Shown: positions 1-43,555 of the stretch, one piece after another
Layout of the letters: each line of letters opens with the position of its first letter
Numbering within the stretch: position 1 is the stretch's first letter
Assembly (NCBI GenBank): GCA_028023455.1
Contig: JAQFVV010000006.1
Coordinates: forward strand, 18,972,001 to 19,036,000
Source of the DNA: Epiperipatus broadwayi
Taxonomy: Eukaryota > Animalia > Onychophora
DNA: 64,000 nt
Direction of reading: 5' to 3'
The notes under the pieces: generated by a model
Told to the model about the DNA's origin: nothing
Database searches by the model: none
What the model saw: the letters and a program-made list of their open reading frames with translations, nothing else
Position numbers and translations under genes: made by a program

Positions 1-119
1 AAGTCATCTATTTATATTGAAAAGATTCAGCAGCAAATTGGTTTAATTAAATTCAAGCGAATCAATAATTATAACCTTAAGAGACAAAAAGACAAGTTTA
101 TATCTAGCATTTTGAAAAA

Positions 120-1530
120 ATATACCCGTCAGCTATCGTCACTCCACACATATTTGTAAAAGGAAAATTCCACAAGCAGAACTATCTAATCTTTCAAAAG
201 AAAACTATCTAGACTTATGATCGACTTTGGCAGAGCATAATATAACCTAGCAACCAAAATGGTTGCAAAGTGTTTGCAATCTGAACTTGGTTTCAGAAAG
301 TTGACAATTAAATCATCTTTTGATTTTGTTAATATTATTAAAAATGTAAATATTTGTGAATAGTTCAGAATGGCTTCTTTCGTTATGACCGAGCTCTACA
401 GGTCAGTCAATTGTGTAGGCCAATTAATATTATACATAAACTACTGAAGCATAGCACGGTTAGCGATAAGAGGATACAGTTTATCATGGACATGTGGGGT
501 TTTAACAAGAATCTGCATGCATTGTGTAGGGATGAATCTTTTCTTATGAACACAAATTGACCCATGGGTTTATCAATTAAATGACATGATTTTTTAGCTT
601 GCAGTGGATTTTATTGAGAATGAGATCATTCTGCCTTTCTTGGACACTGATAGGAATATGACATACACAAGAAATGTGGATGATGGATTTGTTTGTGTTG
701 ACACTGAACTCATCCAAGAGATGTTTAACAAATTGAAACTATTCCCAGAAATTAAATAAAACATGGACGAAGAGGACAGTGGTTATACTATCAAATTTCT
801 AGATTTGAGATTGACAAGGCAAAATCAAACTATTGATTATTCAATGATTATTAAATCTCCTAGCATCAGGGGTTACTTGCACCCACAATCTGGGATCCTA
901 TTCTGATATAAAATGGCAAGTTTTAAAGCCTTTTTATCTAAAAATAAAAAACTAAATTCAAAGCAGTTAGAAGAGATAATATAGAATGCTACAGAAAGGA
1001 CTTGATTAGGGTTGACTACCCAAGCACCATGCTTGACAAACAAGGATATTTCACAATGCACATACATCTAGTGATACACCTAACACTAAGCCATGGATTG
1101 ACATATTGTATATCCCTAATATACACTCATCCATTTTGTACTCTGACTTTAATATTGGCTTCAGATGCCATACACTTATCAATAATTCTAACGATAGTAT
1201 TAATCGCAAAGACAAACTCAATTAGTTTATGCCCTGGATTGCAAATTTTGCCATGAAGAAACCTATGTAAACCTAAAATGTAGAATAACCCCAGCATGTT
1301 TACTTATACAATAGAATCAAATCCAGCAACGCATATAGCTCAGTATTTATTGACCATGAAAATCATACTGGTCATTCTTTCAAACTTGCCAATGCTAAAA
1401 TTGTCTAACTTGAAGATAATTAAAAAAAAAGGGGAAATAAAAAAAGCTTGGTGTATTATCAACTCCCAAAACTCTACAAACATAAGTGCTAATAGAATTC
1501 CTCTCACTAAACACTGCATTTAATACAACA
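120..1530 (+). mobile_element. Decayed Penelope-like retroelement (RT + C-terminal GIY-YIG endonuclease)
   Basis: Broken frames give PLE-type motifs in order: PHIFVKGKFHK, SSFDFVNIIK, PMG, YTRNVDDGFV (~665-700), IKFLDLRLTR, LVYALDCKFCHEETYV (~1220-1270, GIY-YIG VY..C..C), DHENHTGHSF, KAWCII. Many stops and frameshifts; ends approximate. Confidence 0.85.
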
Positions 1531-1649
1531 TAGCGTGAAGTTTTTCGCATGCAAATTTATAATAATTAAGAGCCAGCTTAATTTACATTTTATACATAGA
1601 GGAATATGGCTAATACTTTACTATTTCATTTTTTGACCATGCTACCGTA

Positions 1650-4065
1650 TAAAAAGCCTGGCTTAGTAAATAATAAAATTTTAGATTTAAATTTATTACT
1701 GTATTTGAGTTTCAATTTTTCTTACATATTTTATTGTCAATTTGTACTTTACTTAAATTTAATGTTTGTGATCTATTTACATTTTGTGACTTATTGACAT
1801 TTTAAGACTTTTACACTTGGCATTTTGAGTTCAAATTAAGTAATTATTGAGGTTTATGTATGACAGATAATTTATTTACAACATTTAATTTACATTTTGT
1901 CTGTTTTACTGTCTTTAACAACTTTGTTTTCTTTAGGTTGAACTATTTTTGGAACTAGTTGTCCTCTTTTTGGGTGCCCAGCCAATACATAATTTTTTTG
2001 TTCTGTCTTTACTGAAACTCTCATCAATCTTCTAACTACACTGCCGAGTTACCCTTTTGATATTCTTACAGTAGCGACAGTTGAATAGAATCATATTCTG
2101 ATTTTTCTTCTTCAGACATTTTAATAAAAAGATCATTCAATTTAATAGAGTTGTCTTTTAAATTAACATCTGTGCAGTTTTTTTCTTTTTTAGTTTTAAT
2201 ATCTCTTCTAATGCAGAATCAGTTTTAGTTTCTCTTTGTTATCTATGCACCTCATAAGTTTTAATTCTTCAGCGGCTTCTATCTTCATAAATTTCAAATT
2301 TTTTCTGCTAGATTTATTTTTTTCATTTTTTATATTACTTTTAACTACTATCATTGGATATAAAGTTTCTTCTATTTTTATTTCTTTCTCTGATTGAAGT
2401 GTTTACTTCTTTTCTGATTGAAATATATTAAGCTATTTTTCTGCTTTAACAATATTACATTCTTTTTCTGTTAAAATATCAATTTTTTTTCTCTTTTTAA
2501 TTATCTGAATTTTATTCTGATTTAATTTCATCTGAAGCTTGTTCTTTTTTTAATTATGTTACATATAACTTTTTCATTTTTAATTTCTTTCATATCCTTT
2601 TCAATTTAATTGTAGTTTCACTCTTATCTGTTTTAGCTATACTTGCATCATTTTCTGTCTTGGTGACAATTGATTTGTAATCTGTTTAACTTCATTCACT
2701 TCTTTTTTTACTTCTGATTTCACAATAACAGAATTAGTATTGGGTATTTCACTTTCCAGTTTACTATTTTGAGAATCATTTTTCAGAATGTTTTTCTGAT
2801 TTTATATTTGGTTTCTTTCTAGTTTCAGGTTCTGAAACTTTTTTTGATTTTACATCTGATTTATTTTTAGTTTTATATTCTATTTTGTCTGGTTCTAATT
2901 GTAAAGGTTTATCAAATGATTCTCAAGTGATTCTGTTTTAATATTATTAACAATTTTTGAAGACTTTTTTCATAATTAAATAACCTTTTGTGATGTCTTC
3001 AGTATCAGATGACGCTGACTTGTTTATAGATTTATAATTATGAGATTTACAATCATCACTGTTCTTATCCAACACATCATTGAGACTACTTCCATTTTCT
3101 AAAAAATTATGTACTTCACAATTAGTCTTTTTTAATCTTGTTAATCTCTACAATTTTATCAGACTATAATTTCAGACCATATTTTTTTTTAATTTTGAAC
3201 TGTTATCATTATTTGACATTGGAATTAATTCATTCTCCAGTTCTTTATTTCTTTTGGTTATAGTGGTGACGCTAACTGGAATATTTTCTTTTATATTTTC
3301 TTTGTGCAAATTATATCTTCCTGCTGAGATTCTGAATTTTCTACCAAATTTTTAGCCTCTTTCTTCTTTGTATTAGTACTATCTTCTTTTGTTATTTATT
3401 CTTTTCCATCATATTCAGAGTTTCCAGAATTGCTTATTAAAGAATCATTCTGAAGTTGTTTCTTTGGTTTCCTGAATAATCTTTATCTATAGTATTGTCC
3501 ACATTGCCATCTGTTGTAAGTTCTTTTTGGTTTTTCAATAGAAGCTGGAAAAGTATTGATTAAAATGTCCAACTGTTCATGATTACCGGTCTTTATCATT
3601 CTGCTCTTCACTATATATCCATACTGGGAGATCTTTATCTAACTGAAACCACTATATTATCCCACTAGAATCTCAACCAATTAGAAGCCTCGGCCTCAGA
3701 CTTGATAACCTCATTCTTGAAAGTGATGTTGTTATCAAACAGACAATCACATAATGTCTTGAGCAGCATGAGTTTGATGCAAGTTTGCAATTCTTATAAC
3801 CAAACTTTTCCATTTCCCCAAGTATCAACTTAAGAAAATTGATGGAAAAATGTAACTAAATTTTTTTCCCACCATTCGCTACTGACACTTTTTCCCCAAG
3901 TTTTCTTTTTTATATCTATCAACACTGATTTAATTTCTTTCTGGTCTTCTAAATAATTCTGAAGCTTTGCAATAGAAAGGTCTGGAAAATCTACAAGTGC
4001 CCCATGATACTTTACCATAAATGAACAAATAATGGATAAATACTCATACTAGCAGTGTCAATTAG
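1650..4065 (-). pseudogene. RSF1: Processed (intronless) RSF1 pseudogene, 5' part: N-terminal DDT/WHIM-like region plus charged linker, no PHD finger seen
   Basis: Minus strand reads ICSFMVKYHGALVDFPDLSIAKLQNYL...GKSVSSEWWEKNL...WEMEKFGY...LKTLCDCLFDNNITFKNEV...WFQLDKDLPVWIYSEEQNDKD, matching recalled RSF1 (VCSFLERYGPLLDLPEL...GKSVTADRWEKYL...WEMEKKGY...LKYLCECQFDDNLKFKN...WYQLDQDHNVRMYIEEQDDQD). Multiple stops and frameshifts. The 3' boundary (1650-1900) is uncertain. Confidence 0.85.
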
Positions 4066-4084
4066 ACTTACAGTAATATGAGCA

Positions 4085-4735
4085 ATGAATGCAAACAAAA
4101 TTATGTCCTCATGCCTGAATATATTCATGTCAAGATGAACAAAATCAATTCTGATTGGACAAAAATCTTGCACAATATGCAACCAGCTTCAGAAACTGTT
4201 CGAAATCAAGCAACTGCCCGCTGTAACTTCCAAACCATCACCTTGGTCACATTTTGACCAGTGTATAATCAATTATGTGATTGGTTATTGCTTTTGGATC
4301 ACATGCTTCACTTGTAGATTGTAATAGTTGGTGATCTAGCTGAAATCCAGGAAATGATTAATAAACAAAAGAATGTGTTGCATGATTTGTATCAAAAGCA
4401 GACTCAACTTGATGAGATTCTAAGCATTGCAGAACACCTAAATAATAACAGAGTTTGAAAGCACTGCAGGATAAAGTTGAACAGTTCAGGGAGAGCTGGG
4501 AAGATGCTAATGCCAAAATAAAGTTTAAAAAAAAAAGTAACTGGATATCATGTTGGCAGATAGTAGAGGTTTTCATGGTATGAGAGAATCATTTGAAAAA
4601 TGGTTAACTCAAGCTGAGAAAAAATTGACTACTATGAGTGTGGTATGACAGACTGTGGATGTTTTAGCTCAGCTTGGAACATAAGATTTTCCAGGAAGAA
4701 ATAGACCAGTGTCGCTTTGTTTGCTATCATAAATT
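4085..4735 (+). pseudogene. DMD: Intronless internal fragment of a dystrophin/utrophin mRNA (hinge 3 to spectrin repeats ~20-21)
   Basis: Translates QTITLVT...QLCDWLLLLDHML.L.IVIVGDLAEIQEMINKQKNVLHDLYQKQTQLDEILSIAEHL...QLDIMLADSR, versus recalled dystrophin TQTVTLVT...ELTDWLSLLDQVIKSQRVMVGDLEDINEMIIKQKATMQDLEQRRPQLEELITAAQNL...QLNEMLKDST. Contains stops and frameshifts. Confidence 0.85.
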
Positions 4736-4739
4736 CCTG

Positions 4740-5800
4740 AGAAAATTTGAATGTGTTGGGCTCCTAGTTGGAAGAGATATATCATTTCCTTTGTCTTCAT
4801 CTCTAAATAATTATGCAGAATAATTTTGGATTCTTAACTTCAGAAACAATGGGTTCTTCATCACTATGAATTATAAACTATGATTATTAGAAAGTTTATG
4901 ATTACTATAAATTTTTAGATAGTGAAATAAGTTGACCGAGGAACCAGATTCATCTGAATTATTGCTGTGATCTGAATCATGAATTTCATTTTTTTTAACC
5001 CAATTCAGGCTCTTCTTTACACAAAATAGGCTTAAAAAGAGGAATATTCTCATTGCTATCTTAACTTTGCAGACTAATGCTTGTAATCCTTGGTTTTTCA
5101 CTTTCAAAACTTAAATGATCATTTTTAAACCTCCCATCTGGAAGACTTCACAAATCAAAAATATGACCAAAACTACGAGATCATTTCCTTGATGGAGAAC
5201 AAAACTTGTTCTTATTTTTCAGAATCAGCTGTATGGCTTAAATAATGAACACAAAAACTGGAGTGATGCTTTTTAATGTTGATATGTTTATGCTTTGTTT
5301 AAGAACATGATCACAAACTTCAATATTAGCTTCTTCATATTTAGCATTGTTTTCTATTCAATTGGTGACCCAAGAACAACTTCACACAGCTGAATGACAC
5401 AGTAGAAATAAGGTCCATGTTGAATACATACCTTTAAAACATCAACTAGATTCATTCTTCTCGATGGATTTGCATCATGCACACTTCTTAAAATAAGCTG
5501 AAGACTATGACTTAACTTTCTATGCTTATGGTGTTCAATTTCACACTCAGTTCCATATTGCAGCATTTTACCTAAGGGGAAAAAACCTCAAATTTCTGCC
5601 ACTTTTATGATGATAAGCTCAAATTCTCAATGAATGTGAACAGATCAAACTTAGCTCTTTTGGAAATCTATACAAGCAATCATTTGGATGATTAAAGAGA
5701 CAATTACGGGATTGGTAAAATTATTCAAAAGCAAATTTCATAGGAAATATAACGGTCATCTCCAGAATTCAAATTGACTATTTCATACATCATTTTTGTT
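4740..5800 (-). pseudogene. Intronless fragment of a KIND-domain protein gene (PTPN13/FRMPD2-like)
   Basis: ORF 5566-5354 and flank, LGKMLQYGTECEI...KLSHSLQLILRSVHDANPSRRMNLVDVLKVCIQH..CVIQLCEVVLGS, aligns with the recalled PTPN13 KIND C-half LGMTLYWGADYEV...KLGDHLNSILLGMCEDVIYARVSVRTVLDACSAH..YVKHLVKLVLGN. It is followed by S/D/N-rich linker; disrupted. Confidence 0.65.
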
Positions 5801-6089
5801 TGGAATATAGCTAATATATTAAAGGGAATGCTGGAAAAATAGTTTGGATATAAAAAAAATCAGACTTAAAAAAATAACTCTATATAATATTGTGGCTGCA
5901 GAACGGAGTTTGTTATTAACTGAAAGGAGATGCTTTGATTCCTCTTGGAGGCCTTAAAGGAACCAAGCAAGGCAAATTTCCTAATATCCACTCCATATGT
6001 TCTTGTCGTTGCAGCTGTTATTACTATGTGATTATTCTATAGTATACGAACATGGATAGGCTGCTCACCAACACGCATTAGCCAGCATG

Positions 6090-9055
6090 GTGAGTTTATT
6101 GGCTTTTTACCTCCGAGTTTATGAATATCTTTTCCAATATATACAATCATGACAGACAAAAATAAATCATGGCCCTTATTCCCAGGAAGCGGTTGGTGAC
6201 TGAAGGAGGAGGATGCTAAGAATCCCCTGATTGCGGACCCAGGCTGCTATTTGATGAGCTTTTATTTAGGTACTTGCAAACTGCAAATCACTTTCAAGTG
6301 AAGAAAGATTGCAAGAATTAGAAGAATTATCATATTAAATGGGACATTATTGGAGTTTGTGAAGTTAAAAGAAAAGATGAAGAGACAATTGATTTAAAAA
6401 GTGGGCATGTACTCTACTATAAAGGTATAAATTTTGGAAATATGAGTGGAGTAGGATTCATTATAAATAAAAAGTGGAAGAACAACATTGTGGAGATTGA
6501 TGGTGTATCGGACAGAGTGGCAAGATTAATTATACAACTTAATAGCACATACCAAATGCACATAATTTAGGTTTATGCCCCAACAAGTTCTCATAGTGAT
6601 GAAGTAGTTGAAGATTTTTATATATGGATGTACAAAAGGCTTTTGATCAAAGTAAACATTTTAAAATTGTTATGGGAGACTTTAATGCTAGAATTGGTAA
6701 ACAAATGAAGGATGAAAGTGCTGTAGGTAATTTTGGTTATGGTAATAGAAGTGAGAGAGGACATAAACTTGGAGTTTCCAGAAAAAGAAAAACTTTATAT
6801 TATGAATTCTTTTTTTTGAGAAAAACGCTAAAAGGAAATGGATATGGAAGCATCCAAATGAAGGTACAGCAGAATTGGATTAAATTTTGACCAACAGAAA
6901 ATACATATTTCAAGATTGTAATGTTCTTAATAAATTTAATACAGGAAGTGATCATCGATTAGTAAGACGTAAGATACGTGTTAATGCCAAACTAGAGAGA
7001 CAAAAATTATTAAGAAAAACAATATTTACAGTTGATATTCCTAATCTTCAGAAACATTCTAGTGAATTAAAATTTAAGAACTTACAAATCGGTTTGAAGT
7101 ATTAGTAGATTTTGAACATGATTCAAATTTGAATAAAATTAATATGAAAATAACTGATACACTTTTAAAAACTGCAACAAAGATAGCTGGTAGAAAAAAA
7201 CAGCAACTGGCCAATAAAATTTCTAGTGAGACTAGAGAATTTATGAAGAAAAGAAGGAATATGAAGATAGACTAGAGAATTTATGAAGAAAAGAAGGAAT
7301 ATGAAGATATACAAAAATGATGCATTAAATATGATTGAATATCTCGAATTTTCTACAATGATGGAGAAAAGAATTGAAAAATGATATAAGAAATACTTAA
7401 CTGTGAACTAGCAAGGAAAGCTGTAGAAGAGAATAAAAGTCTCAAGAGTGTAAAACAAAATTTTGGTATTGGTAGGAAATTTATATCTGCAATAAGAAAA
7501 AAGATGGAATTATTATTAAAACGAGAGATGACATCATGAAATGGGTAAAAGACTTTTATCAAGAATTATATAGTAATAAAAAACAAATACGTCCTATATC
7601 TATTACATTCCGAATTGCCCAGAATTTTAAATGAAGTGAGACATGCAATTCAATGTATGAAGAAAGGAAAGGCTCCAGGTAATGATGGAATCTATAATTG
7701 ATATATTAAAAGAAGCAGGTCAAGAAATAGAAAAATTTTTAACCAAGTTATATACCAAATGTCTAAATGATAAAGATGTACCAGATGATTGGAAGAACGC
7801 AGTATTAATATTAATATTTAAAAAAAGGTGATAAAGAAGATATTAGAAATTACAGACCCAGCAGCTTTTTATCAGTTTTTTACAAAATTTTTACCAAGAT
7901 AATTACAACTTGTCTACAGAGAACATTGGATTTCCACCAACCAAGAGAACAAGCTGGATTTAAAATTGGTTTTAGTACAGTAGATCATATCCAGGTATCG
8001 AGAGAAGTTATAGAGAAGGGCAAATGAATATGAGTTGCTATTATGCTTTGGATTTGTAGATTATGAAAAGGCATTTGATTCTATAAACATTTCTTCAGGA
8101 TTAAAGCATTGGATCATCAAGGCATAGATCCAGGATATTGTCATATTTTAAAGAATATTTATAAAAATGCAACAGCAACAATTAAATTTAATAATGATAC
8201 TTGGAAAGTCAACATTGAGAAGGGTATAAGACGGTGACTCCATATATCCCAAACTTTTTACAGCAGTGCTGCAAGAAGTATTTTGTGGATTAAAATAGGA
8301 AGCTAAAGGAATTAAAGTAAATGGAGATTATTTAAGTCATTTAGATTTTCCAGATGATGTAGTTGTTTTTGCAAATAATGCTTTAGAGCTGCAGGAAATG
8401 TTGCAGGAGTTATCAGATGAAAGTAGGATTAAAGATAAATGTTAAAAAGACTAAAGTAATGTTTAATGGATTTTCTCAAAATATGAAAATAAAGATCGAC
8501 TATGATGAGTTAGTAATAATTAAGTTACAAATACCTTGGTCATATTATTAATACAGGTGGAAACATAATGGATGAAATTAATCATAGAATTAAGCTTGGT
8601 TGGAGTGCTTTTGATAGAAATAATTTGATACTAAAAGGAAATATGCCCATGTGTTTGAAAAGGTTTTTAATAAATGTGATTTATTAGGTCTTACTTATGG
8701 ATCTGAGACTTGAACACTTAATAGAAGAGCAATACAGAGACTTCAGACCAATCAAAGAAAGTATGGAGAGATGTATGTTAGGAGTAACAAGAAGAGATAG
8801 AAAACAATATATGAGTGAAAGAACAAACAGGTGTTACTGATCTTATTGAAAAAATTAAAAGACTAGAATTGGGCCAGACAAATTGCTAGAAACGATAATA
8901 GATGGACAATTGAAATCTTAAACTGGATTCCAAGAGATTGTAAAAGACCCAGAAAGAGACCACATGTGAGATGGATGGATGAAATAAGAAAGTGTGCAGA
9001 GGTGACATGGAGAAGAGAAGCTAAAGATCGGAGAAGATGGTTTGAACTTGGATCA
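6090..9055 (+). mobile_element. Near full-length decayed RTE-clade LINE (family A; APE + RT)
   Basis: ATG at ~6149. APE motifs WDIIGVCEV, GVGFII, VYAPTS, MGDFNARIG, GSDHRLV. RT motifs GKAPGNDG, NYRP, QPREQAGF, FVDYEKAFDS, HL.FPDDVV, YLG. C-terminal WIPRDCKRPRKRPHVRWMDEI. Includes a 40-bp internal tandem duplication at 7230-7309. Confidence 0.93.
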
Positions 9056-9226
9056 ACGATGATATAGAAGTTAATTTATCAGTTAAAAAAAAAAGTCACC
9101 ACAGAAGTGTTAAGATGCTTTAGTCTGGTGAGTGTTGCAGGTACTATATTCCAAATCAGGAAATTTTATCCAAGAGAAATGTATCACTGCATGGTCATCT
9201 GGTAACTGAAAAGAAATTTTGTCACT

Positions 9227-11199
<1,973 letters not shown>

Positions 11200-12552
11200 C
11201 AAGAAGTTAGTTTTAGTTATGAGCAACTTTTACAGCTACTTTTTATAGTAAGCCATTTATTGCATGGGTGAGGTATGTTTGGGAATAAGCTGTTAAAAAA
11301 CTAAGTCCATTCAGCTTGTGACATCCCTCCTTTCCTTACTATTTCAATGGGATTTGTTGATGAAGTCCAGGGCACTCGTAGGAAAACTTTGTGTAAAGAT
11401 GCTTGCTGGATAGTCCCAAAAATGATGCCATTTAAGCATATCCTGTCTGGAGAGGATAATTTATTCCCTATTGCCAGTATATGCAGTCTAGTTCTAATTT
11501 TGCTATCACGGAAAAATGTTCGCGACAAGTGTGATTGGTAAATAGTGCATCATATGGCATGATGAATGGAAAAAACTGCAGCTATTATGGCTGAAATTTT
11601 TTTTTTGTCAAATTATTTTGTTTTATCTTACTTTTTTTGGGTTTTGTTAATTTTTTTAAAAAAAAAAAGAACTTTAACTTGATTTTTTAAAAAAAAAAAG
11701 AAAGGGAGGATTTTAAAAAATAACACTAAGAAAAAGTTGGAAAAGATCATTGCAATTCTGTGCCCACACATTAAACACAAAATATAAATACACATTATTT
11801 ATGAACTTGTTGAATTACAAAGTCTATAGCCAAATGTATTATACTTTCTCCCTCATTCCACCATATTTACAGAAGTATAAACAACACCACAGACAATGAA
11901 TATGTAAAGTATATGATGGATAGGCAGGTAAAAGACAGTTTATACAAATACTATGAGGTGTTTTGGTTAAGATTTTATTATCTGGTGGGGGGAAAAAAGG
12001 AATAGAACCTAACAAATTTGGTACTTACATAGTTTGCCTGCTGGAAGCTTGCCATCTGTTTTTTTTTTTTAAAAAATAATCCATTTTCAAGGGCTCAGAA
12101 CACATGCTATAAGTTATTGTATTCAATAATTATGTTTTTTTATTTATTAAAATGATAAAGAAACATAAAAGTCCAAAGAGTTGTAATTCAAAAATTTTTT
12201 AATATAAATAAAATTAAAAAAAAAACAACATTTAATATTGAAGCACTCAAATCTGTTGCACACATTTGGCTTCACTTTCTAATAATGTTTGAAACCTCCA
12301 AACATGGGTTCAAACCTAATCATTTAATTATAGACCACTGGGGAGTGAAGGTATACCAATGCACGTGATTGTTTATGTATTTGTAAACTTTAAATTCATT
12401 TAAAATTAATATGCATAAAAACAATTATATATTTTCATTACGGTAAACAATCATGCGTATGTGTGTGTAACAGATAAACTTTAATAATTTAAAGCGTTGC
12501 ATAATGTATATTTTATTCATACATATATTTTAATAGAGAGAAAGTTCGAGAG

Positions 12553-12899
12553 TGTGACGTAAAATTAGTAAATAAAAGACTTACCGTCTTCCAAATTCTA
12601 AAAAAAAATCTGTTTTATTATAATATAGATTTATTTAAACGTCATGTTAGTTAACGTTGATTCCGCAGATCTATTTTCAGCCTAAAGTAGATCAAAACTA
12701 ACTCTCGAACTTAATCTCGTTTGTAGTCCAAAATATGCTGTATCATTGTAGTTATTAAAACATCCGGGAACTACCCATCGGCGGTGACAACGAGTATAAA
12801 TACAACCACATTTTCTAACTAAAGAGGAGACATGTCATTTTTTCTAACGCGTTGCTAAGGGGAAGTCACGCCCCTCTGAACGGTAACATGACGAGCTAG
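12553..12899 (+). mobile_element. Possible LTR (TGTGACG...GGTAACA, 12553-12888) followed by a PBS-like sequence
   Basis: Has TG...CA termini and a TATAAATA inside. It is directly followed by TGACGAGCTAG, resembling a tRNA-Arg PBS (TGGCGAGCCAG). No partner LTR, TSD or coding region found. Confidence 0.3.
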
Positions 12900-15424
12900 T
12901 AAAACATAGATTTGCTTCCCCGGATCTCTCCAAAAATCTAACCGATGCCTAAATACTCGGAAACCATCGTTCATAAATTACTGCCAAAATGAACTTTATA
13001 TTGAATAAAGAATGGACTGAAACCTTAATTTCGTCAATTTGTAGCTAAATTAACTCTTTTATCAAACATGGAACCAACACGTGCGCACCCGGCTGGAAAT
13101 TCATCGGAAAGAAAGGTAATTCCCTGCCGCAAAAATGAACTTTCATCTTAATAACCTTTTCTATTGTAAAATATAAATGTAAACCTCCAATAATGTTATT
13201 TCCCATCAGCTAATGTATGTCTTTTAAACATTTCTAGTTCTGAAATTTTTCCTAATGTAAAAATGTAATTGCTTATTTCTCTATCGGTAATGCTAAGCCG
13301 ATTAACTGCCTAAACAATGACCTCTTTTCTTTTTTGATTTCTTTTTGTTTTATATTTAAACTGTAATTCTCACTTTATAAACTCGAATGCTAGGTTCTCA
13401 CTCTCCTTGTATTTTTATTTTAATGCGGCAATGTTTATTTAATATTATGCAAATCATATCAAATTTTAGTATGCTAATAACTCGATCTGGCGAATCAATC
13501 CTATTTATTTTTGCTATTCTGCCATTGCGGAAGATTTAATCGTAAACGTAAGCTTGCTTACATTATAAAATTCGCCCGATCGAGAGATATTCCTAAACTA
13601 TGTTTTAATAATGAATATTATGCTTTTCACTGCTATTTAAAATAAATAATTTACTATTGCTCCACGCTATTGATTAACATGATGAAAATTGAGTATTACA
13701 TAAATTTAATTCAGATCTTTATGTCTAAATGATTCATTTTATAAGTAGCCCGCCATCTAACGATAATTTAAGTCACTTATTTCTCGGGCGGATTAATATG
13801 CGTTTAACGAAGGAATTTTAATGTTTTTAATATTTTATCCTTAAGATATTGAATAAATTCTTTAAGTAAGTTGTATGCCCCCGTTTGGGACTGCTTTTAG
13901 ATCATTATTTCATTACGTTAGACTTAATTAGTATTTTAAGGCTGTATAAATCAGGGTAAATCAAACCTGACAGCTTTCGTAACGTGTCCCGGTGATAACG
14001 TTCCTAATTCAAAAATGGCTTTGTCATACTTTCTCTCGTTAATGGAATATATATATAGCACAATTCTCGACAGAGCGTGGAGGCCCCAGCTCTTACAGAT
14101 TGTCTTAGGTTAGGTAAGCGCTGCTATGGGTTAACATTCGACGAGTCGGAACCATAGTATCTTGCCAACCAATTCCCGATGCTATCCGTCACAAGTGCGG
14201 ATAAGCTTATTTTCTTCGCTCCCAAATTGATGAAGCTCCTCGTCCGCTCAGGCCTTATCATGCGGTTCACACGTTATCGTTCCTATCCTTTCATATGGTT
14301 CAGATGTCTATAAGCCGTAATGATATAATTTCCCTAAGCCATCCCAAAATTCTCGTTATAGTTTAAATTTAATTAACTTTATTATATATATTATCGCTTA
14401 TTAGCGCTACCCATCCTTCGTTCAACCGCTATTAATACATCATTAATTAACTATTGAGAAAATTTATAAATGTTGACTCGCACGACAATATCAAAATGAT
14501 CATGCTTTTCCTATTTCTCTTCGCAGATAAGAAATAAATGAATCATCTCATAATGTTCCAAAATAATTGATCTATAATTAATGTACCTTCCATGAAATCC
14601 AAATGTAATCAAAACTTGTTAGATCATTTATTATTTAAAATATAATCGTTATAAAAGCTCGCGTATAGTTATCAAATTATGTTATATTCATCTTAATTTA
14701 AATGTAATCATATGTTGAATAAAAACCCTCGTACTGTTATTAAGTTTGGTCATATTCTATGTAATTTAAAATCTTATAAGCATTCATTCTAAAAGCTATT
14801 GTCATTGGTTAGTTTCCTTAATTTAGGAATATCATAGCGTGAGTAATAGCAACCCGTTAAATCACATTAGCATATTAAGCCGCATCTGTTCAAATAATTA
14901 ATTTATCATTATGTATATTTAGTGGTGCATATCCATCAAACCTTGTTATGTTATCCGGTTTGACATGGAATGCCCAAGTGACCATAAGTGAAACCTAAAT
15001 CGAGTGTTCAATATATATAATTTCTAATTCATTGTAAATCTCCATATCTAGTGATTCACATGATTAATCAATTATTATTAATATTACGTTTAATAAATTT
15101 ACATTTAATAAGCTATTTTTTGGATATTTTTGTTGGTTTGTGTGTGCACATCTATCATTACTTTGCGTTATCAATTAGTTAAGCCGTAGGTCTCTTGTAT
15201 CTTTGCTGAACCTTTCTGGGCCGGAGTAAATTGAAGGGTAGACTGTTATCATCAGAAATGTTGTTTGTAATGTGATAGACTTGGGAAGTGGGCAATAGGG
15301 CGGAGATCATGAGTATCCCTGACCTGTGTATCTCGTATATGATTGAACTCTAGGTACTTTTGCTTAGGTCCTAATTCTTGTTAGACGAACATACAATTCT
15401 GACCGGTACAATATATTATAACAA

Positions 15425-17229: not shown

Positions 17230-18441
17230 TTTCGTCAAGATTTGACAAGTTAATAAACAAGCTAAATCTAATTTTTGTAAAATGAACTATAATCTGACTT
17301 TTCCAAATCAATTAGTGTTTAATTTTTTTTTTTTTACATTTCAGTTTGCTAAAAATCATTTCCATTTTTATTTTTATTAATATTTATTGTAGAAATTATT
17401 AAATTTAAGTTGGTCATAGACACTTGCATGGATTCGTTCACGTTTAATTAGGTTTTTGTTTTCATATATGATTAAAATATATAGACATTCGGTAAATAAT
17501 GATATCTTACGTTTGAATATCTAAAATGTATTTATTCGATGTCTTTTTAGTTATTGGTGTCAATGCGGCATCTTATGATAAATGCCATTGGGTTTCTAGT
17601 GAATTCCCTCTGCAATTACATCAATGACTTTATATTTTGATCATTTATGTTTATGTTAAAATGTTTTTGAGCGTGTAATCTATGTAATCGATCTGTGCTC
17701 AAAATTAAAAAACAAACTTTTATAAATCCATCTGTGCGAATTTATATAAATGTTAAATTTAAGTTGGGCATGAATGGCTATATAGATTTGTAAAGTTATA
17801 TTAATTAATTAGGGGAGGGTAATCTTAGGTTATTTGTTTCGTAGTTAAATTAGGTCAATGGATTGGATATATTGGTGTAATTAGTAGATGTAGTATGAGG
17901 TTCACTACGTGCATGATCTCCATTATACGCTGCACACCTCTTTTTGCCTATGGAAGTGAATAGTAAGACGGAAAAAATGCAGTCCCTTCCTATGGAGTTT
18001 TTTTTTGTTGTTGTTCTTCTTGCCATATAGATGTAACATTCCTGTATTGGACAAGAGTCAATGTCTTCTCTAATCATGCTGTTCAGATGTACATTCCTGG
18101 ACAGTATGGTATATATTTGTGCTGTCATATTTTCATGCTACATTGAATACATCAATGTATCAGATGGATTGACGCCGGTTTGACTGCGAACTTTTGGCCT
18201 AAATTTAAATAAGGGATAGAATATTTTCTTTTCAAATACAATCTATGTAGTCTATTCATACTCGACAATCTTAATAAACCACTAAACATCACATGATCAC
18301 CATTTCTATACTAGCACATAATTGTTGTAAACAAAGGCAAAACTCTCCATACAGTAGTGCCACCCTGTGCCAAACAGAGTAATCAATGGATGCCAGAAGG
18401 CTTGTGCATAAAATCCCTATCTAATGCCTACTCATCCAATA

Positions 18442-18483
18442 TCCCCAGACTAGTTTCTGGCTTGTGGCCATCATCAGTGAGGA
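18442..18483 (-). ncRNA. Type I hammerhead ribozyme, intact core
   Basis: Minus strand TCCTCA-CTGATGA-TGGC cacaa GCCA-GAAA-CTAG-TC^TGGGGA. Stem I TCCTCA/TGGGGA is extended by ATCCAA/TTGGAT across an internal loop. Confidence 0.9.
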
Positions 18484-19087
18484 GTCTTGGATCTGAGAGC
18501 ACTGCACCTAGATCTTAGGATCTAATGCAACCCTCTAGCAGCCACCTTTTAACTCTACTTTACTACAAAACTATGAGAATGAAATTGAAAACATTGTTAA
18601 TATCTTCAATCTAAGCTCAATAGCTTATATAGTCATATGGGTCTGAACTCAATTCAGCACCCATACATTTTGGTGTCTTTGGCTCTTAAACAACCATAGC
18701 CACCACTATCCTATTAGGCAGGATTGGTGTTAAACCACTAAACATCACATGATCACCATTTCTATACTAGCACATAATTGTTGTAAACAAAGGCAAAACT
18801 CTCCATACAGTAGTGCCACTCTGTGATGTTTAGTGGTTTAACACCAATTCTGTCTAATAGGATAGTGGTGGCTATGGTTGTTTAAGAGCCAAAGACACCA
18901 AAATGTATGGGTGCTGAATTGAGTTCAGACCCATATGACTATATAAGCTATTGAGCTTAGATTGAAGATATTAACAATGTTTTCAATTTCATTCTCATAG
19001 TTTTGTAGTAAAGTAGAGTTAAAAGGTGGCTGCTAGAGGGTTGCATTAGATCCTAAGATCTAGGTGCAGTGCTCTCAGATCCAAGGC

Positions 19088-19128
19088 TCCTCACCGATGA
19101 TGGCCACAGCCAGAAACTAGTCTGGGGA
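19088..19128 (+). ncRNA. Hammerhead ribozyme copy with core mutation (CCGATGA)
   Basis: TCCTCA CCGATGA TGGC caca GCCA GAAA CTAG TC TGGGGA; U4-to-C change in the conserved core. Confidence 0.8.
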
Positions 19129-20421
19129 TATTGGATGAGTAGGCATTAGATAGGGATTTTATGCACAAGCCTTCTGGCATCCACTGATTACTCTGTTTGG
19201 CACTACTGTATGGAGAGTTTTGCCTTTGTTTACAATCTTAATAAAAACAATATTAAATTCATTTGTATGGACAATCTTAAAATAATAATTTAAATTAAAT
19301 GTTATTAAAATCTAAAATAATAAACGTTATTCCTCAAATTTAAATGATTATATATGTGCGTAAATAAATATTGTTTGTGTGTTAATTACTGGCAGTGGCT
19401 TTTATTTTTTTTATATTTAAGATATCAAATTAAACAAAGTTATATATTATTATCTCTGTGTCTCCAATGAGCTAGTGACAATGGGCTAACAGTCAGAATC
19501 AAAATATATAAAATTTAAAAAAAAATTTTTTTTTTTAAACTTACATATCTGCCTACTATATAAATTTTCTAGGTTCAAATGCCTAGTGGCGCCTTGTAGT
19601 GTAGATACGATAAGTCTCCTTATTATTCCAGACCATTATACTGTATTTACATTAAAAAATTTTACAATTACAACCCTTTGGACTTTTGTGTTTCTTGAAC
19701 ATTTTAATAAATGAAAAAACCATAATTATTAAATACGATAACTTAGTCATATTGTTCATACCATGTACTGTAAGCCCCTGAAAATAGACTTTAAAAAAAA
19801 ATGAATGGCAAGCTTCTGGCAGGCAAATTACACAAGTACCCAAAATTATTTGAAAAAGAAACAATTGTAAAACAATACCCAGACTGATAGTCAATCGTAA
19901 AGGATTATTATGAAGATTTTAATCATAGTGAATTAAAAAGGCATTATATTGAGCACAAAATAATGAATCAGTTTTACAACAATGCTCCATTTTTTTTGAA
20001 CTAAAAAAATAAAATAAAATACCATAGCCTCTGCTCATTAAAAGTTTACCAGAACACCTGTGGACTCTGTGGTGAGTATATAAAAAAGGAAATAATATAA
20101 TGGAGATGTTTGCACATAATCTTTAAAAAAAAAGGAAGTTTGTAAACTTTATGAACTAGGAAAGAACCAAGATAGGAAGGGGTCAAAAGCAAAAAATAAT
20201 GTATGTTGTTAAAAAAAATCAGAAGTGATACAAAGCTTTTTTTATTACACGGTTGTACAATGATAAAAGACCAAATTAGTAAACTTTTTTAAATTTATGC
20301 AAACAATTTAATACAATCAAATTGATATATTATAAAAAGATTTTAACAAGAAATTTTTTATTTCGCCTATGCAATCTTTTTTCTGATCAAATTACTTTTA
20401 ATATTTGACTTAAAAACTTAC

Positions 20422-26119: not shown

Positions 26120-29100
26120 TCATTTTAGCACACATTTTACTTCTAACTGCACTATCTCTTTACATTCTAACTATATATATATATATGGCACTAAATAGCT
26201 ATATATAGCACCTCCTCCACTTCAGAAATTACAATTTCTGAAGTCTCACACAGTCTTTCAGATAGCTCGGTTCTTTTTAGTTCTTTGGGATCTATGCAGG
26301 GTTGCTTTTCATCAGTTATGTCATTGTTTACTTTGTGCCCTTCATTTATTTCTAACAAGTCTGATTCCTCTAGATAATTTGGAATGTCCAGCACTATATT
26401 ACTTCCAGTTCACTCAATTTCTTCTTTCCGATATCTGACATGATTTACATGTTTTCACGTGATTTTCTCTGTTTCTGTTTCAACAACTACTATTTCCTTT
26501 GATAGATGTTTTTTTAATTATGCCTTTCACCCGTACTTACCGAAAACATCTCTTAACCAGACTTTTTCTCCCTCCGTGTACTGCAATTCTGAGCTGTTGT
26601 TTTAATTACTCGAAAAATTTTGATCTGGATAAATCAATAACTTTGTGCAGATTTTCCATCGAATATTATCTCAGCTGGAGATTTACCTGAACTACTGTGC
26701 TAATACATTAAAACAGAATACAATGTTTTTGTATATTTGCAGTATCTTCCTTTCATAGCATTTGTACTGCCTTTTCTGCAATACCATTGGACTCAAGAGT
26801 GATATTGGGGCATAGCTATTTGTTTAATTCACCATTCCTTAAGAAAATACTTGAATTTAGTGAACATAAAACTGATTTCATTGTCAGATACTATTGTTTT
26901 GGGAAAACCATGAAAAGCAATTGTTTCTTCAGTGCTTGTATTTTTTCCAATTCTATATTCAGTCTACTTTGAGCACAAGTAGATCACTACTAAAAAAAAT
27001 GTAGCCGTAGAAAGATCCGGCATGATCAATGTGAATATGACCCCAAGCTTTATTGACTACAGGCCATGTAATATAATTTTTCTTTGGGAATGTTTGCATT
27101 CACTTGACAATTCTCACAAGTTTCCACGAATTGTTCTATCTAAGAATTAATTCCAGGCCACCCTACATAACTTCGAGCAAGTACAGTAGTCCATACAAAG
27201 CTGACGATGACCACTACTAGGTATTAATAATCTATTATCCATTAACATGCATATCTTATTTATAGACAGTTTTTCTCTTATGTCCCACATAGATTAATGA
27301 AGTATCTCGGGCCAACTTCTGGGCTAGCTTTTGCTGATCCACTTGATCAAAAGTTTATAACCATGCTCAGCTTTTGTTCAACTCTCTATCTTTTCACTGT
27401 CTATTACTACATTATTCCAATTGCCTATGTAGTTAATGGTTGGATCAAGTTCCTGTAATTTAATTGGGACTCTCGACAGCAAATAACATTTCCTTTTTTT
27501 AAAATTTAGCTCAAAATACCCACTAATAAATTTAGCCATTGTAACATTCTAGAGCTCAAATGATTTAGTGCAGTTTTATTTTTAGTCCATATTCCTAACA
27601 GTGACTTATAATCAGTAAGATCTTGAATGGTCTGCCATAGAAGTAATGGTAGAATTTGCCTCTTTATCTAACTGACTGTAGTTTTGCTCTGCTTGGGTTA
27701 GTGTTCTAGAAGCGAAAACTATTGGTCACTCCCACTCAGCTATTGTTTGATTTAAACCGCTCCAACCCCAAAATCCAATGCATCTGTTATAAATATCACT
27801 TGGGGGCTACTGCCATAATATACTAATAAACTATGTGATGTCAACAATCCTTTATAGCACTAAAAGCTTTTTTGGAGGGGTTTGATCCCAATGCCATTTT
27901 TGACCTTTTTAAAAAAATTATACAATGGTCGTGCTACATGCACTTTTCCCTTTAGAAAAATTTTGAAATAATTAAGAAGGCCCAGAAAATCCTAAAGTTC
28001 TCATACATTTCTGGATCTTGGGTACTTCTTTTAGGGCTATGATTTTCTGAGGATCGGACTTCTTTCCCTTGCTTGATATGATAGGTCTCAAGAACTTTAT
28101 TTCAGTTGTTATCCAGATATCTTTTTCTGGGTTTATTCTAGCTCGAAAACTAGATAACTTATTGCAAAATTTTAATAAAAGTCATTCACGCAATTTCTCC
28201 TCTGAATTTACAACTATAAAATATCATCAAAATAAGGTGTCATCCATTTGTTGGAACAGCATGTTCACCTTGGCTTGGAAGATGTTTGGTGCAATGGTAA
28301 TTCCATAAAGCAGCCTATTATTGTTAAACAATCCCTTGGGAGTAGTGATCATCAACAATTCAGAGGTCTATTTAGAAACTGGAATCTGATGAAATGCAGC
28401 CTTCAAATCAATTTTAGCAAAATGATTTGCCTTTTCCATATTAACTAATATTTTTCTGGTGTTAGGCACAGATACTGACTCTTTGTAAGCTCTTATTGTA
28501 TCATTTACATATATATCGTACAAGTATATTGGCATTGAGTAAGGTTTAAAAGAAATAAAATTTAAAAAAATCATCAATGGACGTAATTTAGTTTTTTTTT
28601 ATTAGTTAGTGTAGTTTATATTATTTTTTTGATACATACAATGAATGCTATTAGTGTTTAAAATTATCTATTTATTAAAGTAATGTTAATATTGGAGAGA
28701 ATGTAAGCACATACAGATTACTATCAGAGTAAAACCTTTCACCAGAAAATTAAAGATGACAGAAATAAGTTATAAAAAATAGAACTTTGTAACTAAAAAG
28801 TAATAAGAAATGTTGAAGATTATAGTGATAATAACACAAAAGATAAGAGGATATGCACAGAAATCTCAAAATGGTCATCAGTATAAAAAAAGCAGACAAG
28901 TTTAGAATTGGTCTTTTACCTGTGTTTTGCTGGCTGTTTCTTATGTGCAGCATTTTTGAAGACAATAAAATGCTACTACCCAGAACTACTATGATGATTC
29001 GCCATAACTTTCTCTCACAAAAGTCACCAAAAACTTTGTCTAGCCTTGCCCTAAATACGAATCAGAGATGCAAAAAGTTTTACCAGAATGAAGCCTTAAA

Positions 29101-32020
29101 GAATTACCATGGACTCCTCACAAAAAGAACTTACTGGTAAGTCAATGGCCACATCGTAACTCATATATAAATCAAAAACAGATTTATGAACTAAAGTTTA
29201 AAAGATAAACTTCTAATATAGCAAAAAGAAAGAAGGAGAGACATTTGTGATTTTATTCTTAAAAGTGAACTATTTGAATTAAATGGTTAACGTTTTTTCC
29301 AATATTATAATTCTTATTGTTTAAATATTTAATGTGTGTTAATAAAACTTTTACTAATAATATAAACCTTTCATTGTACTTTAATTATTTAGATTTTATT
29401 ATTAAGTTTAGAGAATTGTGTAAATTACCTTTGCCGATATGCTTGATTAAAGCATGGGAAAAATTCTTATAATAAATTAAGTGACAGGAAAACATAATTC
29501 TGCTCTTACTGTTAATTATTTACTTTGTAAGTCTCAACAAAAATGTGACAAGAGTTAGGAGTCTACAGATTCTGGAGCCCTCTTAAATAAATTAACCTAA
29601 CTCCAGCGTCAATTCGAGTTATAATAAATATGCGGTCAGTTAGACAGGAAACATAACTATTTCTTGAAATACCTGCATTCCTACTGGATTGGATCACTAT
29701 CATTAAATAGTTTGGCTAACTAGCACTTTATAGAAAGTAATAAAAGACCTAAATCAAAACATAAACTGTCACATTCTTATTTACCATAATAATCTCCACA
29801 AATGCAAACTTGTCCATTTGGTTTAGCTATCATTCCAAATGGAATGATCCATTTGGTTTTCTTGATTGGTGTCCATACTCCTTTACTAATTAAATCATTT
29901 AACACCTGTTCTATTTTAGCTTGTAGTGCAAAAAGAACTTTTCTAGGCCTGCAAATCATGGACATTGCTCCATCTTGCAACACTATATCTATTGGCATAG
30001 TAATGATTTGGCTCTCCGTATTGTTAAATAAATTTGTGTATTTATTTCTTATTTCTTCCTCAATAGCAATCTTGTTAACCATACATATTTTTATTCCCAG
30101 AGCCTTGAACCATTCCCTACCTATAATAGAGTTAAGACTGCCTTGCGCTATATATAATGGTAGTCTACAGCCTTTTTTTAATTTTTACACTTATGTCTAC
30201 TTTCCCTAATATCCCCATAATATTACCACTAGCATCTTTCGCTTTCAAACTAGTTCTCATTAATATAGGGGAGTTCATACATTTTTTTGTTACTTTATCC
30301 CAGTTTTTGACTGCTATCATTGACACAACCGATCCACCGTCAATTTCCATTTTCAAATTTGAAATTTAATAATTTCACTGACATCATTAATGGATTGCCA
30401 TGAGTAATGTGGTAAATCTCAGATTCCTGCTTATTTCTCTTTTGAAAAAGTTGGCAAGGTGCTACTATCTTTTTCCCCATTAGCCCTATATGCTTTCTGT
30501 AAATGATCTACTTTGCCACAGGCTATACAATGCTTTATTATTAAATCTACACTTCCTTGCCATGTGGCCTTTTTTGCACAGCAGGAGCAAACAATTTCCT
30601 TCATCTTACTCTTAGCAGGCTAATATTTATTTTCAGTTTTTTGTACAAACACGCTACACTCATTATTAGTAAAATTCTGAAACTGCTTAGATTGGTCAAT
30701 CGTGATCTCATGGGCTAGTCCCATTTTGACTCCCTCCTCATACATCAAGTTTCTTGAAGACAGTAACTGCTGTTTAAGCCTATCATTAGACATTTCCCAA
30801 AGTAATTGTTCAAGTAGATTATCCTCTAACGCATTGCCATAACTACAACTCCTAGAAGTTCCCCCAATGTTTGATCATAATCATGTAAGTGTTCCCCTTT
30901 ATTTTGCTATCTATTCCTAAAATGTAGTCGCACTACATGCTTAGAGGGCTTGGGGCTAAAATAATTATTTAGTTTTTCACCTACTATTTTGTACAGCAAT
31001 TTCTCTGGTTCTTTGTAATTGCATAGCCAATTTGAGATTTCTATACTTGTTGCCTGACATAATATAACAATGTGGCATCTTTAATGGGATCACTGATAGC
31101 CTCTTGAAATAAATTGATCAATCAACAGGGCTATTGACATTAAATTCATTTATTGTCACTTGCGGCACAGATATCATCTTAACTCCGTAATTCAAATTAG
31201 TAATTACTAATTTAAAAAAAAATTTTTTTTTCCACAATTATCAAACTAGGCTGACTTATCCAACCAGTGTAACCTTATTATGCCTACAAAGTTACAGCTA
31301 CTGATCGAAATCCCATCTCTGACTATGACTAGCAAAAATTGCAGTTCGATTTTAATCCTGTAAGGGACTGCACCAGTTTCTACTATGTACAGCCACCATG
31401 AATGTTACAGTCATGATAAGTGTGGTCAGACAAGCAGAAACAAAATTAATTCGAAACAGTTTTGTTATAACTAAAATTTTGACTTTATTGCCACAAGTTA
31501 ACAATAGTAAAGTTTAAACTAACAATACTTAATACACGTTACAAATTTATATAGTTATAGTTCAGTAATAAAATTACTACGTATGAATGCATGGCCATAA
31601 AGGTGTAAATTAAAACATAATAAAAACGGTGTGGCCTGTTTAGTCCCTAGGTCCACTTCTGCAATTTCAATGGTGGAATTCACTGGATCACTCCACAGTC
31701 CTCCTTACGCTCAGCCATTCTGTATCTTCATATAAACATGACCAGTTCCAACAATGCAAGTTTATAGTTTAGACCTCAATTCGCTTTATCTGTGTGAGAG
31801 CTTTTATATCTTCCCTGCTGATAATAGAATGTTCTAGAATATAATTATTATCTTTTTAATAAGTATTCATTTCCTAATCTGAAATTGCTTATCAAAATTT
31901 TAATCTTTAATATTTGTAACTTTGTAATACTTTATTTCTTTTAGTTTTAACACACATTTTACTTCTAATTCCATTATCTCTTTACATATTCTAAATATAT
32001 ATATGTATATGGTACTAAAC
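26120..32020 (-). mobile_element. Decayed Gypsy LTR retrotransposon 1 (gag-PR-RT-RH-IN order)
   Basis: 5' LTR ~31381-32020, with an ~80-bp remnant of the 3' LTR at ~26120-26195 next to a GGAGGAGG PPT-like tract. PBS TGGTGCAGTC at 31375-31366. Gag knuckles ~30480-30600; protease EIDGGS (~30340); RT KIDLKAAFHQIP; integrase ARSYVGWPGI and IVSDNE. RT is interrupted by an insertion at ~28520-29785. Confidence 0.9.
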
Positions 32021-32640: not shown

Positions 32641-32961
32641 ATCACATGATCACCATCTCTATACTAGCACATAATTGTTGTAAACAAAGGCAAAACTCTC
32701 CATATAGTAGTGCCACCCTGTGCCAAACAGAGTAATCAATGGATGCCAGAAGTCTTATGCATAAAATCCCTATCTAGTGCCTACTCATCCTATATTCCCA
32801 GACTAGTTTCTAGCTCCTCACTGATGATGGCCACAAGCCAGAAACTAGTCTGGGGATATAGAATGAGTAGGCGATAGGGATTTTATGAACAAGCCTTCTG
32901 GCATCCATTGATTACTCTGTTTGGCACAGGGTGGCACTACTGTATGGAGAGTTTTGCCTTT
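32641..32961. mobile_element. Retrozyme-like element copy C (inversion breakpoint inside the ribozyme)
   Basis: Forward arm 32641-32815, inverted arm 32813-32961. TSD GAGTAGACTT (32631-40) / GAGCAGACTT (32962-71). Confidence 0.9.
32815..32856 (+). ncRNA. Type I hammerhead ribozyme, intact core
   Basis: TCCTCA CTGATGA TGGC CACAA GCCA GAAA CTAG TC TGGGGA. Confidence 0.9.
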
Positions 32962-41079: not shown

Positions 41080-41206
41080 CTCTAAAAGCCAAATAATGTA
41101 ATGTTCTAGCTCTCTCATGCTGAATGCCATTCATATGCTTTTTTCTATTCTGCGCATTATCTGGAAATGTTCGATCACAATAATCACAGTAATAACGTTT
41201 TCCCAT
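41080..41206 (-). CDS. ZMAT5: ZMAT5 coding exon 1 (127 nt), matrin/U1-type zinc finger
   Basis: ttttgcag|ATGGGAAAACGTTATTACTGTGAT...TTTAGAG|gtatgt gives [42 protein letters not shown]; recalled human [42 protein letters not shown]. The acceptor AG abuts the ATG, so an upstream UTR exon is required. Confidence 0.97.
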
Positions 41207-43330: not shown

Positions 43331-43356
43331 CTGTTATTTTATTTACAAATCTTTAA

Positions 43357-43555
43357 ATGGACAGTTGAAATCTTAAACTGGATTCCAAGAGATTGTAAAA
43401 AACACAGAAAGAGACCACATGTGAGGTGGATGAATGAAATAAAAAAATGTGCAGGAGTGATGTGAAGAAGAGAAGCTAAAGATCAGAGAAGATGGATTGA
43501 ACTTGGAGAGACCTTCATCCTACAGTGGATTGATAATGGTTGATGATAATGATGA
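43357..43555 (+). mobile_element. 5'-truncated RTE family A 3' end with GAT-rich tail
   Basis: Near-identical to 8903-9050 and ends ...gataatggttgatgataatgatgat. Confidence 0.9.

Follow-up and report, generated by a model that had tools for sequence, protein, structure and literature searches.

A 4.2-kb block of DNA in the onychophoran Epiperipatus broadwayi, situated near the left end of a 64,000-nucleotide (nt) stretch of contig JAQFVV010000006.1 (assembly GCA_028023455.1, positions 18,972,001 to 19,036,000; this whole stretch is called the window below), contains intron-free pieces of two, and probably of three, unrelated host genes in alternating orientation. From left to right these are a fragment of RSF1 on the minus strand, a fragment of dystrophin on the plus strand, and a fragment likened to a KIND-domain gene on the minus strand, in the order RSF1(-) / dystrophin(+) / KIND-like(-). 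The block is a decayed composite retrocopy, and in this respect belongs to a kind that is already known, the chimeric retro-insertion; its unusual features are the mixed orientation of its parts, the absence of a retroelement part, and its redundant ends. We favour, with a probability of about 0.5, the interpretation that positions 1617-5801 are one retro-insertion, which came to this site as a ready-made block. Established directly are what the RSF1 and dystrophin pieces are, the loss of introns from RSF1, how the pieces are oriented, how far the contents have decayed, and a set of nested direct repeats at the borders (Table 1). The block is now dead DNA, and nothing suggests a function.

The window is AT-rich (G+C ~30%) and has only three open frames of more than 110 codons in its 64 kb. 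Pieces of host genes are few, only ~6 in the whole window, and no known RNA family was recognised in it by Rfam.

Identity, arrangement and decay of the three pieces

A preliminary description of this DNA had assigned the left part of the block to RSF1, and protein searches bore this out. When the 72-residue open stretch at 3833-4048(-) was compared exhaustively with 1.84 billion representative proteins, 21 were matched at E<=1e-3; names were checked for 18 of these 21, and each of the 18, which came from fish, a frog and the snail Lymnaea, was either remodeling and spacing factor 1 or an unnamed PHD/DDT protein. The proteins matched by the piece bear WHIM1, DDT, WSD and PHD domains, and Pfam recognised WHIM1 at 3668-3793(-) (E=0.003). 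By local tblastn, residues 15-173 of the orthologues were colinear with 4039-3589 and could be laid onto it gap-free, along a path that includes one frameshift, six stops and a small deletion; the similarity ends at 4039, ~14 codons before the start codon of the orthologues. The copy is 37-39% identical to the orthologues, which are ~50% identical to each other. The exhaustive search and a word search seeded with the snail RSF1 returned distant RSF1s only (24-39% identity to the copy), with no taxon prominent; a word search with the 72-residue piece was blank, the method being one that detects only proteins of similar length.

In order to judge the loss of introns, the gene structures of Lymnaea and Poecilia were used; both RSF1 genes have introns near residues 50, 82 and 113, and the copy in the window is without any of them. 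Because these old introns, at least three common to the snail and the fish, are all missing, the RSF1 piece is judged to be derived from RNA, as had been proposed.

The same description had carried RSF1 leftwards to ~1650, and this was sustained only in part. No homology to RSF1 was detected at 1650-3589, that is, beyond residue 173, where the orthologues are of low complexity. A strong excess of T marks the plus strand between ~1700 and 3600, and the minus strand holds six open stretches of at least 50 codons as against 1.04 in local shuffles (P<0.001), the plus strand being like random sequence; the period-3 signal was too weak for use. From the skew and the open stretches, it is probable that a coding-derived stretch on the minus strand is continuous to ~1700; the first ~250 nt (1636-1890) were not counted as RSF1. 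No PHD finger was found by Pfam in the RSF1 copy, which is therefore taken to be truncated on its 3' side.

Dystrophin had been proposed for the plus-strand piece, and this assignment stood. The stretch 4318-4455(+) aligned with residues 2491-2533 of the dystrophin chain 9c3c_D of PDB (E=4e-5), in a single match of 43 residues; this was the sole PDB match at E<0.5, no other spectrin-family protein being matched, and Pfam gave Spectrin (E=0.002) and Spectrin_Dys-1 (E=0.05). The flanking pieces, which are short and broken, produced no match when searched alone. By eye, the rest of 4140-4730 reads as the remainder of the same spectrin repeat and the start of the next, colinear and intron-free. 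A run of ten adenines (A10, 4527-4536) represents lysine codons inside the piece and is not a tail; a 17-nt match between 4525-4541 and 9083-9099, which is based on this A-run, was rejected as chance, since the dystrophin reading runs straight through it.

The third piece had been ascribed to a KIND-domain gene. For this name, which is plausible by eye, no support was obtained: Pfam, PDB, the atlas and a word search (which again detects only proteins of similar length) were all blank or gave noise, and Foldseek on a single-sequence AlphaFold model (pLDDT 60) was uninformative. One open stretch of 79 codons is weakly unusual (P~0.03-0.07), and only 8 nt separate the motif ATGATG (5793-5788) from the block's right border. 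By eye, the piece resembles the last helices of a kinase C-lobe or of a KIND domain, a likeness to be taken as a lead.

Neighbouring pieces lie within 100-150 nt of each other or less, this being the width to which the junctions are resolved; 4066-4254(+), at the RSF1/dystrophin junction, had no match. The alternation of orientation described earlier holds for RSF1 and dystrophin, which are opposite (minus and plus, respectively), and the minus-strand placement of the KIND-like piece was made by eye. Stops or frameshifts number ~1.2-1.4 per 100 nt, as counted from the frames and from the RSF1 alignment path, and the level of decay is alike across the whole block. Neither a poly(A) tract nor a flanking repeat was found between the pieces, in agreement with the preliminary description, and no A-tract was found at the 3' end of any of the three; a search inside the block for sequence of a long interspersed nuclear element (LINE) or for an A-tail was likewise negative. 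The pieces are like an ordinary processed pseudogene, for example the DYRK1A copy described below, in being intronless, decayed copies of host mRNA, and unlike it in that each lacks an A-tail, its native 3' end and a duplication belonging to it alone; the intron loss was found for RSF1 and, for the other two, was judged by eye.

No sequence of a long terminal repeat (LTR) was found flanking the block, and capture by an LTR element was rejected on this ground. Capture by a DNA transposon was also rejected, there being no terminal inverted repeats and the RSF1 introns being gone. No repeat common to the block and the rest of the window was found.

Table 1. Features of the composite block and of the two adjoining elements, in window coordinates.
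Feature	Position	Strand	Basis
R1, left copy; candidate 15-nt target-site duplication GGAATATGGCTAATA	1601..1615	.	14/15 vs 5802-5816
R2, left copy; terminal redundancy ACTATTTCAT-TTTTTG	1620..1635	.	16/16 vs 5777-5798 except for the 6-nt gap
Probable RSF1 continuation; lysine/glutamate/serine-rich middle region, truncated before the PHD finger	1636..3588	-	skew and open stretches
RSF1 N-terminal region, residues ~15-173 (DDT/WHIM1); intronless, 6 stops and 1 frameshift	3589..4039	-	protein search, tblastn, gene structures
Head-to-head junction, RSF1 5' end / dystrophin start	4040..4139	.	resolved only to 4040-4140
Internal dystrophin rod fragment (spectrin repeat ~20 and neighbours); ~4 stops, 3 frameshifts	4140..4730	+	PDB, Pfam, frames by eye
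Tail-to-tail junction, dystrophin / KIND-like	4731..4873	.	no feature identified on plus or minus strand
KIND-like or kinase-C-lobe-like N-terminal coding fragment	4874..5801	-	by eye only
R2, right copy; ACTATTTCAT[ACATCA]TTTTTG	5777..5798	.	22 nt, with 6-nt gap = ACATCA
R1, right copy; candidate target-site duplication GGAATATAGCTAATA	5802..5816	.	14/15 vs 1601-1615
Decayed RTE retrotransposon (endonuclease and reverse transcriptase), outside the block	6255..9066	+	Pfam Exo_endo_phos, RVT_1
DYRK1A processed pseudogene, outside the block; coding sequence ~9230-11197, 3' untranslated region, A11 runs at 11658 and 11689	9100..11700	+	PDB, Pkinase, sequence

Nested direct repeats at the borders

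Direct repeats were sought around every combination of piece ends. Within +-60 nt of the borders 1650 and 5800 that the preliminary description had given, the best direct repeat, here called R1, has the consensus GGAATAT[G/A]GCTAATA, and its copies differ at one of 15 positions; its score was reached by 2.7% of 2000 control pairs of the same spacing. A second repeat, R2, lies inside it, and the order R1-R2 ... R2-R1 frames the block 1617-5801, a pattern which looks like that of a target-site duplication around an insert with redundant ends. Nested pairs as strong as R1 and R2 occurred at 8 of 4000 control pairs (0.2%). Around single pieces, around RSF1 plus dystrophin and around dystrophin plus KIND, no flanking repeat above chance was found; at the ends of the block, no longer terminal similarity, direct or inverted, went beyond chance. 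When the whole window was scanned at spacings of 300 to 8000 nt, ~7 such nested loci were obtained, and all the others were plain A/T runs. Because the nested repeats frame all three pieces and no single piece has repeats of its own, the block is read as one insertion, and the earlier proposal is strengthened to the extent that it described one composite unit.

R1 and R2 together differ at one of 31 bases, plus one gap of 6 nt. The decay of the contents and the RSF1 identities imply a divergence of something like 10-20% for the contents, so that equally old repeats would be expected to differ at 7-11 of the 31 positions. Since the framing repeats are nearly perfect and the contents are full of stops, the block probably came already composite and decayed, and this locus may then represent a secondary copy of an older composite.

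Several points weigh against a single ready-made block. The test of the nested repeats was devised after the pattern had been seen, and several border pairs were examined, a fair corrected P being ~0.01-0.05; as evidence for one insertion the nested repeats are suggestive and not decisive. Near-perfect repeats around decayed contents leave two choices, either that the repeats are chance or that the block is a secondary copy, and the latter is an added assumption. An alternative would keep one block and give it different ends: R2 would be the duplication, and R1 would have been duplicated in the target beforehand or be the remnant of an earlier stub insertion. Inside the block no sequence of a Penelope-like element (PLE) or of an RTE element, no hammerhead and no tail was found, and no second copy of the block was found within the window. 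The KIND-like piece is probably a coding fragment, with an identity given by eye only, and in the mechanism set out below we infer both the enzyme and its templates, as well as the switch to cDNA.

The heavy decay of the contents fits old independent insertions better than near-perfect R1 and R2 do. On such an account, two or three separate events would have taken place: a two-ended insertion of the twin-priming type would have given the head-to-head RSF1(-)/dystrophin(+) pair, its 3'-truncated ends lying outermost, a KIND-like fragment would have been inserted alongside, later deletions would have removed tails and duplications, and R1 and R2 would be chance. The 5' ends of RSF1 and dystrophin do meet, as two-ended priming gives (PMC13174262), and the surrounding DNA is crowded with pseudogenes and the remains of mobile elements. 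However, no above-chance flanking repeat surrounds RSF1 plus dystrophin, KIND alone or any other subset, nested repeats of the kind that surround the whole trio were met in only 0.2% of the controls, and three unrelated tail-less fragments within <=150 nt are improbable at ~6 pieces per 64 kb. We consider this explanation unlikely, if serious enough to be kept in mind.

A further explanation is that of an assembly artefact, in which the inner junctions would unite reads of different loci; tandem and inverted structures of the PLE type are known to upset assemblies (PMC8557442). This is contradicted by the uniqueness of the pieces within the window, the matching repeats at the outer borders, and the similar decay throughout, and we regard an artefact as very improbable indeed.

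Proposed origin and comparison with known systems

Read on the minus strand, the block would begin with the 5' part of a KIND-like mRNA in sense orientation, continue with an internal part of dystrophin in antisense, and end with the 5' third of an RSF1 mRNA, again in sense, the RSF1 part being cut off within an A-rich coding region. We propose that a reverse transcriptase, primed at a staggered break at the left border, would have made one continuous plus-strand DNA. Copying would have begun at an internal A-rich site of the RSF1 mRNA and proceeded to, or near to, its 5' end; a first template switch would have led onto a dystrophin copy of minus polarity (a cDNA strand or the antisense transcript of a retrocopy), and a second onto the KIND-like mRNA, which would have been copied to its 5' end. 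The enzyme would most likely be that of a PLE, with RTE as the alternative. At the present site, the block would have been copied from an older, already composite and decayed source, for example a transcript or a circle, and not from fresh mRNAs; such a transcript or circle, if copied slightly over once round, would account for the terminal redundancy. The predicted empty site is CATAGAGGAATATGGCTAATATATTAAAGG.

Simpler routes were weighed against this proposal. Template switching by reverse transcriptase, or RNA ligation, gives parts that are co-oriented inside one duplication (PMC2104539, PMC13174262), and opposite orientation within an insertion indicates twin priming (PMC13174262). Simple one-pass jumping between mRNAs does not fit the block, because it predicts a single orientation and the middle piece is inverted. 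Plain twin priming, which predicts 3' ends at both borders, does not fit the framed block, because the right border is the 5' end, not the 3' end, of the KIND-like piece. A PLE-like or RTE enzyme able to switch onto cDNA as well gives a better fit, and a single continuous plus-strand DNA agrees with all the features.

The preliminary description had proposed one multi-template cDNA, the work of a template-jumping reverse transcriptase of PLE or RTE. On this version the three mRNAs would have been fresh when they were joined at this very spot, and the product would have decayed in place since. Only one framing duplication is present, with no poly(A) or duplication between the pieces, and the RSF1 and KIND-like pieces reach or nearly reach their 5' ends, as run-off followed by a jump predicts. 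Template-switch chimeras are nevertheless co-oriented (PMC2104539, PMC13174262), whereas the middle piece here is inverted; the repeats should differ at ~7-11 of 31 positions and differ at one; and the terminal redundancy R2 would be left unexplained. This version appears distinctly unlikely to us.

The bi- and tripartite chimeric retrogenes of LINE template switching (of the Buzdin/Gogvadze type; PMC2104539) are like the block in that copies of several unrelated cellular RNAs directly adjoin each other with no intervening poly(A), and in that a single short duplication (14-16 nt) encloses the entire unit. Their parts are co-oriented; at the 3' side stands a LINE truncated at its 5' end or an RNA with an A-tail, and full-length small RNAs make up the 5' parts; the block, in contrast, has an inverted middle, no LINE part or A-tail, pieces of long mRNAs, and redundant ends, and its dystrophin part is internal, unlike the full-length 5' parts of those chimeras. 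The chimeras and inversions of LINE-1 that arise by twin priming (PMC13174262) share with the block the presence of opposite orientations in one insertion and the meeting of 5' ends, here those of RSF1 and dystrophin. They differ in having a 3' end at each border and two parts, where the block has the KIND-like 5' end at its right border and three parts; the RSF1/dystrophin pair alone fits the arm layout of twin priming, and the framed three-piece block does not.

PLE are the best-known makers of such structures. With PLE insertions and PLE-mediated capture (PMC8557442, PMC3846280, PMC11167929) the block has in common a candidate target duplication, an inverted segment, ends that show a short direct redundancy, an AT-rich target and, as proposed, a start of copying within the template. 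Insertions of PLE contain partial tandems, an adjacent inverted copy and a short tail (PMC8557442); purified PLE protein cleaves and extends both strands and initiates inside the template (PMC11167929); and self-priming is on record, as is the capture of unrelated sequences between PLE repeats, with duplications (PMC3846280), so that unrelated sequences framed in this manner are not new. The block is unlike these insertions in that no pseudo-LTR, hammerhead or other PLE sequence was found inside it (Rfam recognised no hammerhead, whether in the segments 1400-2100 and 5700-6400 or, at the gathering threshold, across the window; a consensus of this genome's PLEs was not at hand for the comparison), and in that its redundancy is only 16-22 nt. 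Retained introns mark the PLE-mobilised host genes described to date, but at least three are missing from the RSF1 piece.

A young fold-back insertion at 18265-19245 in the same window has three like traits, namely a duplication, terminal redundancy and an inverted arm. Because it shows them, an enzyme that produces such structures, and switches onto cDNA, exists in this genome. The same insertion bears on repair at the DNA level, whereby loose cDNA fragments, or a microhomology-mediated copy of a distant composite locus, would have been patched into a double-strand break. The orientations look random, and such repair would give random orientations and short border duplications; retroelement sequence was not found in the block, and short nested border repeats are compatible with microhomology-mediated repair. 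The clean 15-nt duplication and the terminal redundancy, however, resemble the retro-insertion 18265-19245, and no repair-specific feature was seen. Break repair seems to us quite improbable.

It is equally a long shot, in our estimate, that the block is a member of a hitherto unrecognised non-autonomous composite retroelement, or a circular RNA, built from pieces of host mRNAs and still mobilised as a unit. Its assembly would be the work of a reverse transcriptase of PLE type, able to use cDNA strands as templates too, and its copies would be of greater than unit length, each with a fresh duplication. If true, it would be an animal analogue of the SVA-like composites, made purely from gene fragments.

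Should the interpretation as one ready-made block hold, the locus would be a natural record of one insertion joining parts of several host mRNAs, some in one orientation and some in the other. Mosaics of this sort are known chiefly from mammalian LINE-1 and from a fungal LINE, in single orientation there, and hardly for invertebrate PLE or RTE machinery. Taken with the fold-back insertion in the window, the locus suggests that the enzyme responsible passes easily from RNA to cDNA templates, and such switching can yield copies of host genes that are antisense or form hairpins. For the present it is a single dead locus that looks unexpressed, and its interest is limited.

Neighbouring elements in the window

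A DYRK1 copy to the right of the block had been counted as a fourth captured mRNA. The copy is real: DYRK1A was matched in PDB (E=1.6e-40), together with a Pkinase match, and the sequence is close to that of the human protein. It is, however, complete and A-tailed, lies outside the nested repeats and beyond the RTE element, and contains the whole coding sequence, ~460 nt of 3' untranslated region after the stop at ~11197, and A11 runs that stand within a duplicated 20-nt motif (11652-11671, 11683-11702). It is an ordinary processed pseudogene and not a member of the array, and the lack of a native 3' end noted for the three pieces does not extend to it. The A-rich repeats at 9083-9096 and 11655-11700 could be its target duplication and tail.

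The RTE element that separates the DYRK1A copy from the block has its 5' end somewhere in 5937-6255, and its 3' end is set by two other partial copies, at 43354-43507 and 63148-63684, relative to which ~34 nt have been lost from the 3' end of 6255-9066. All copies end in a (GATGA/ATAATG)-like microsatellite tail, and a perfect 40-nt tandem duplication lies inside the element at 7229-7309. These 3' parts of RTE are the sole sequence in positions 1-14000 that recurs elsewhere in the window. A 9-nt repeat considered as the duplication of this element was rejected as chance, and no HDV-like or hammerhead ribozyme was recognised by Rfam at its 5' side, near the block or in the insertion at 18265-19245.

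Just left of the block, at 360-1250(+), there seems to lie what is left of a decayed reverse transcriptase, in which '...FLD...' boxes come after a YxDD-like motif; read by eye it resembles a Penelope-like element, and Pfam was blank.

The fold-back insertion at 18265-19245 has an exact 14-nt duplication, ACAATCTTAATAAA, and consists of a 456-nt unit copied 1.2 times (95-nt redundancy, 99%), followed by a 414-nt inverted arm (99-100%). Its designation as a hammerhead retrozyme was not upheld, since no such ribozyme was recognised there by Rfam with the threshold relaxed to E<=10.

Two decayed LTR-retrotransposon pol regions, with reverse transcriptase and integrase, are situated at 28371-30874(-) and 51694-55152(-). 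An open stretch of 71 codons at 41054-41266(-) contains a U1-type zinc finger (Pfam zf-U1, E=2.8e-7) and is either an exon or a further host-gene fragment. At 61726-61941(+), an open stretch of 72 codons matches nearly the whole of the cytochrome bc1 subunit QCR9/UQCR10 (Pfam E=5.5e-15). It could be a genuine small exon or gene; otherwise it is one more retrocopy. Finally, a short repeat is present in four copies, on both strands, at 32848-33057, 59827-60039, 60684-60914 and 61201-61428, with the translation '...GKTLHT..P.SA.QSNQWMPEGL.IKSLS..YSSNI.RLVSSL...'.

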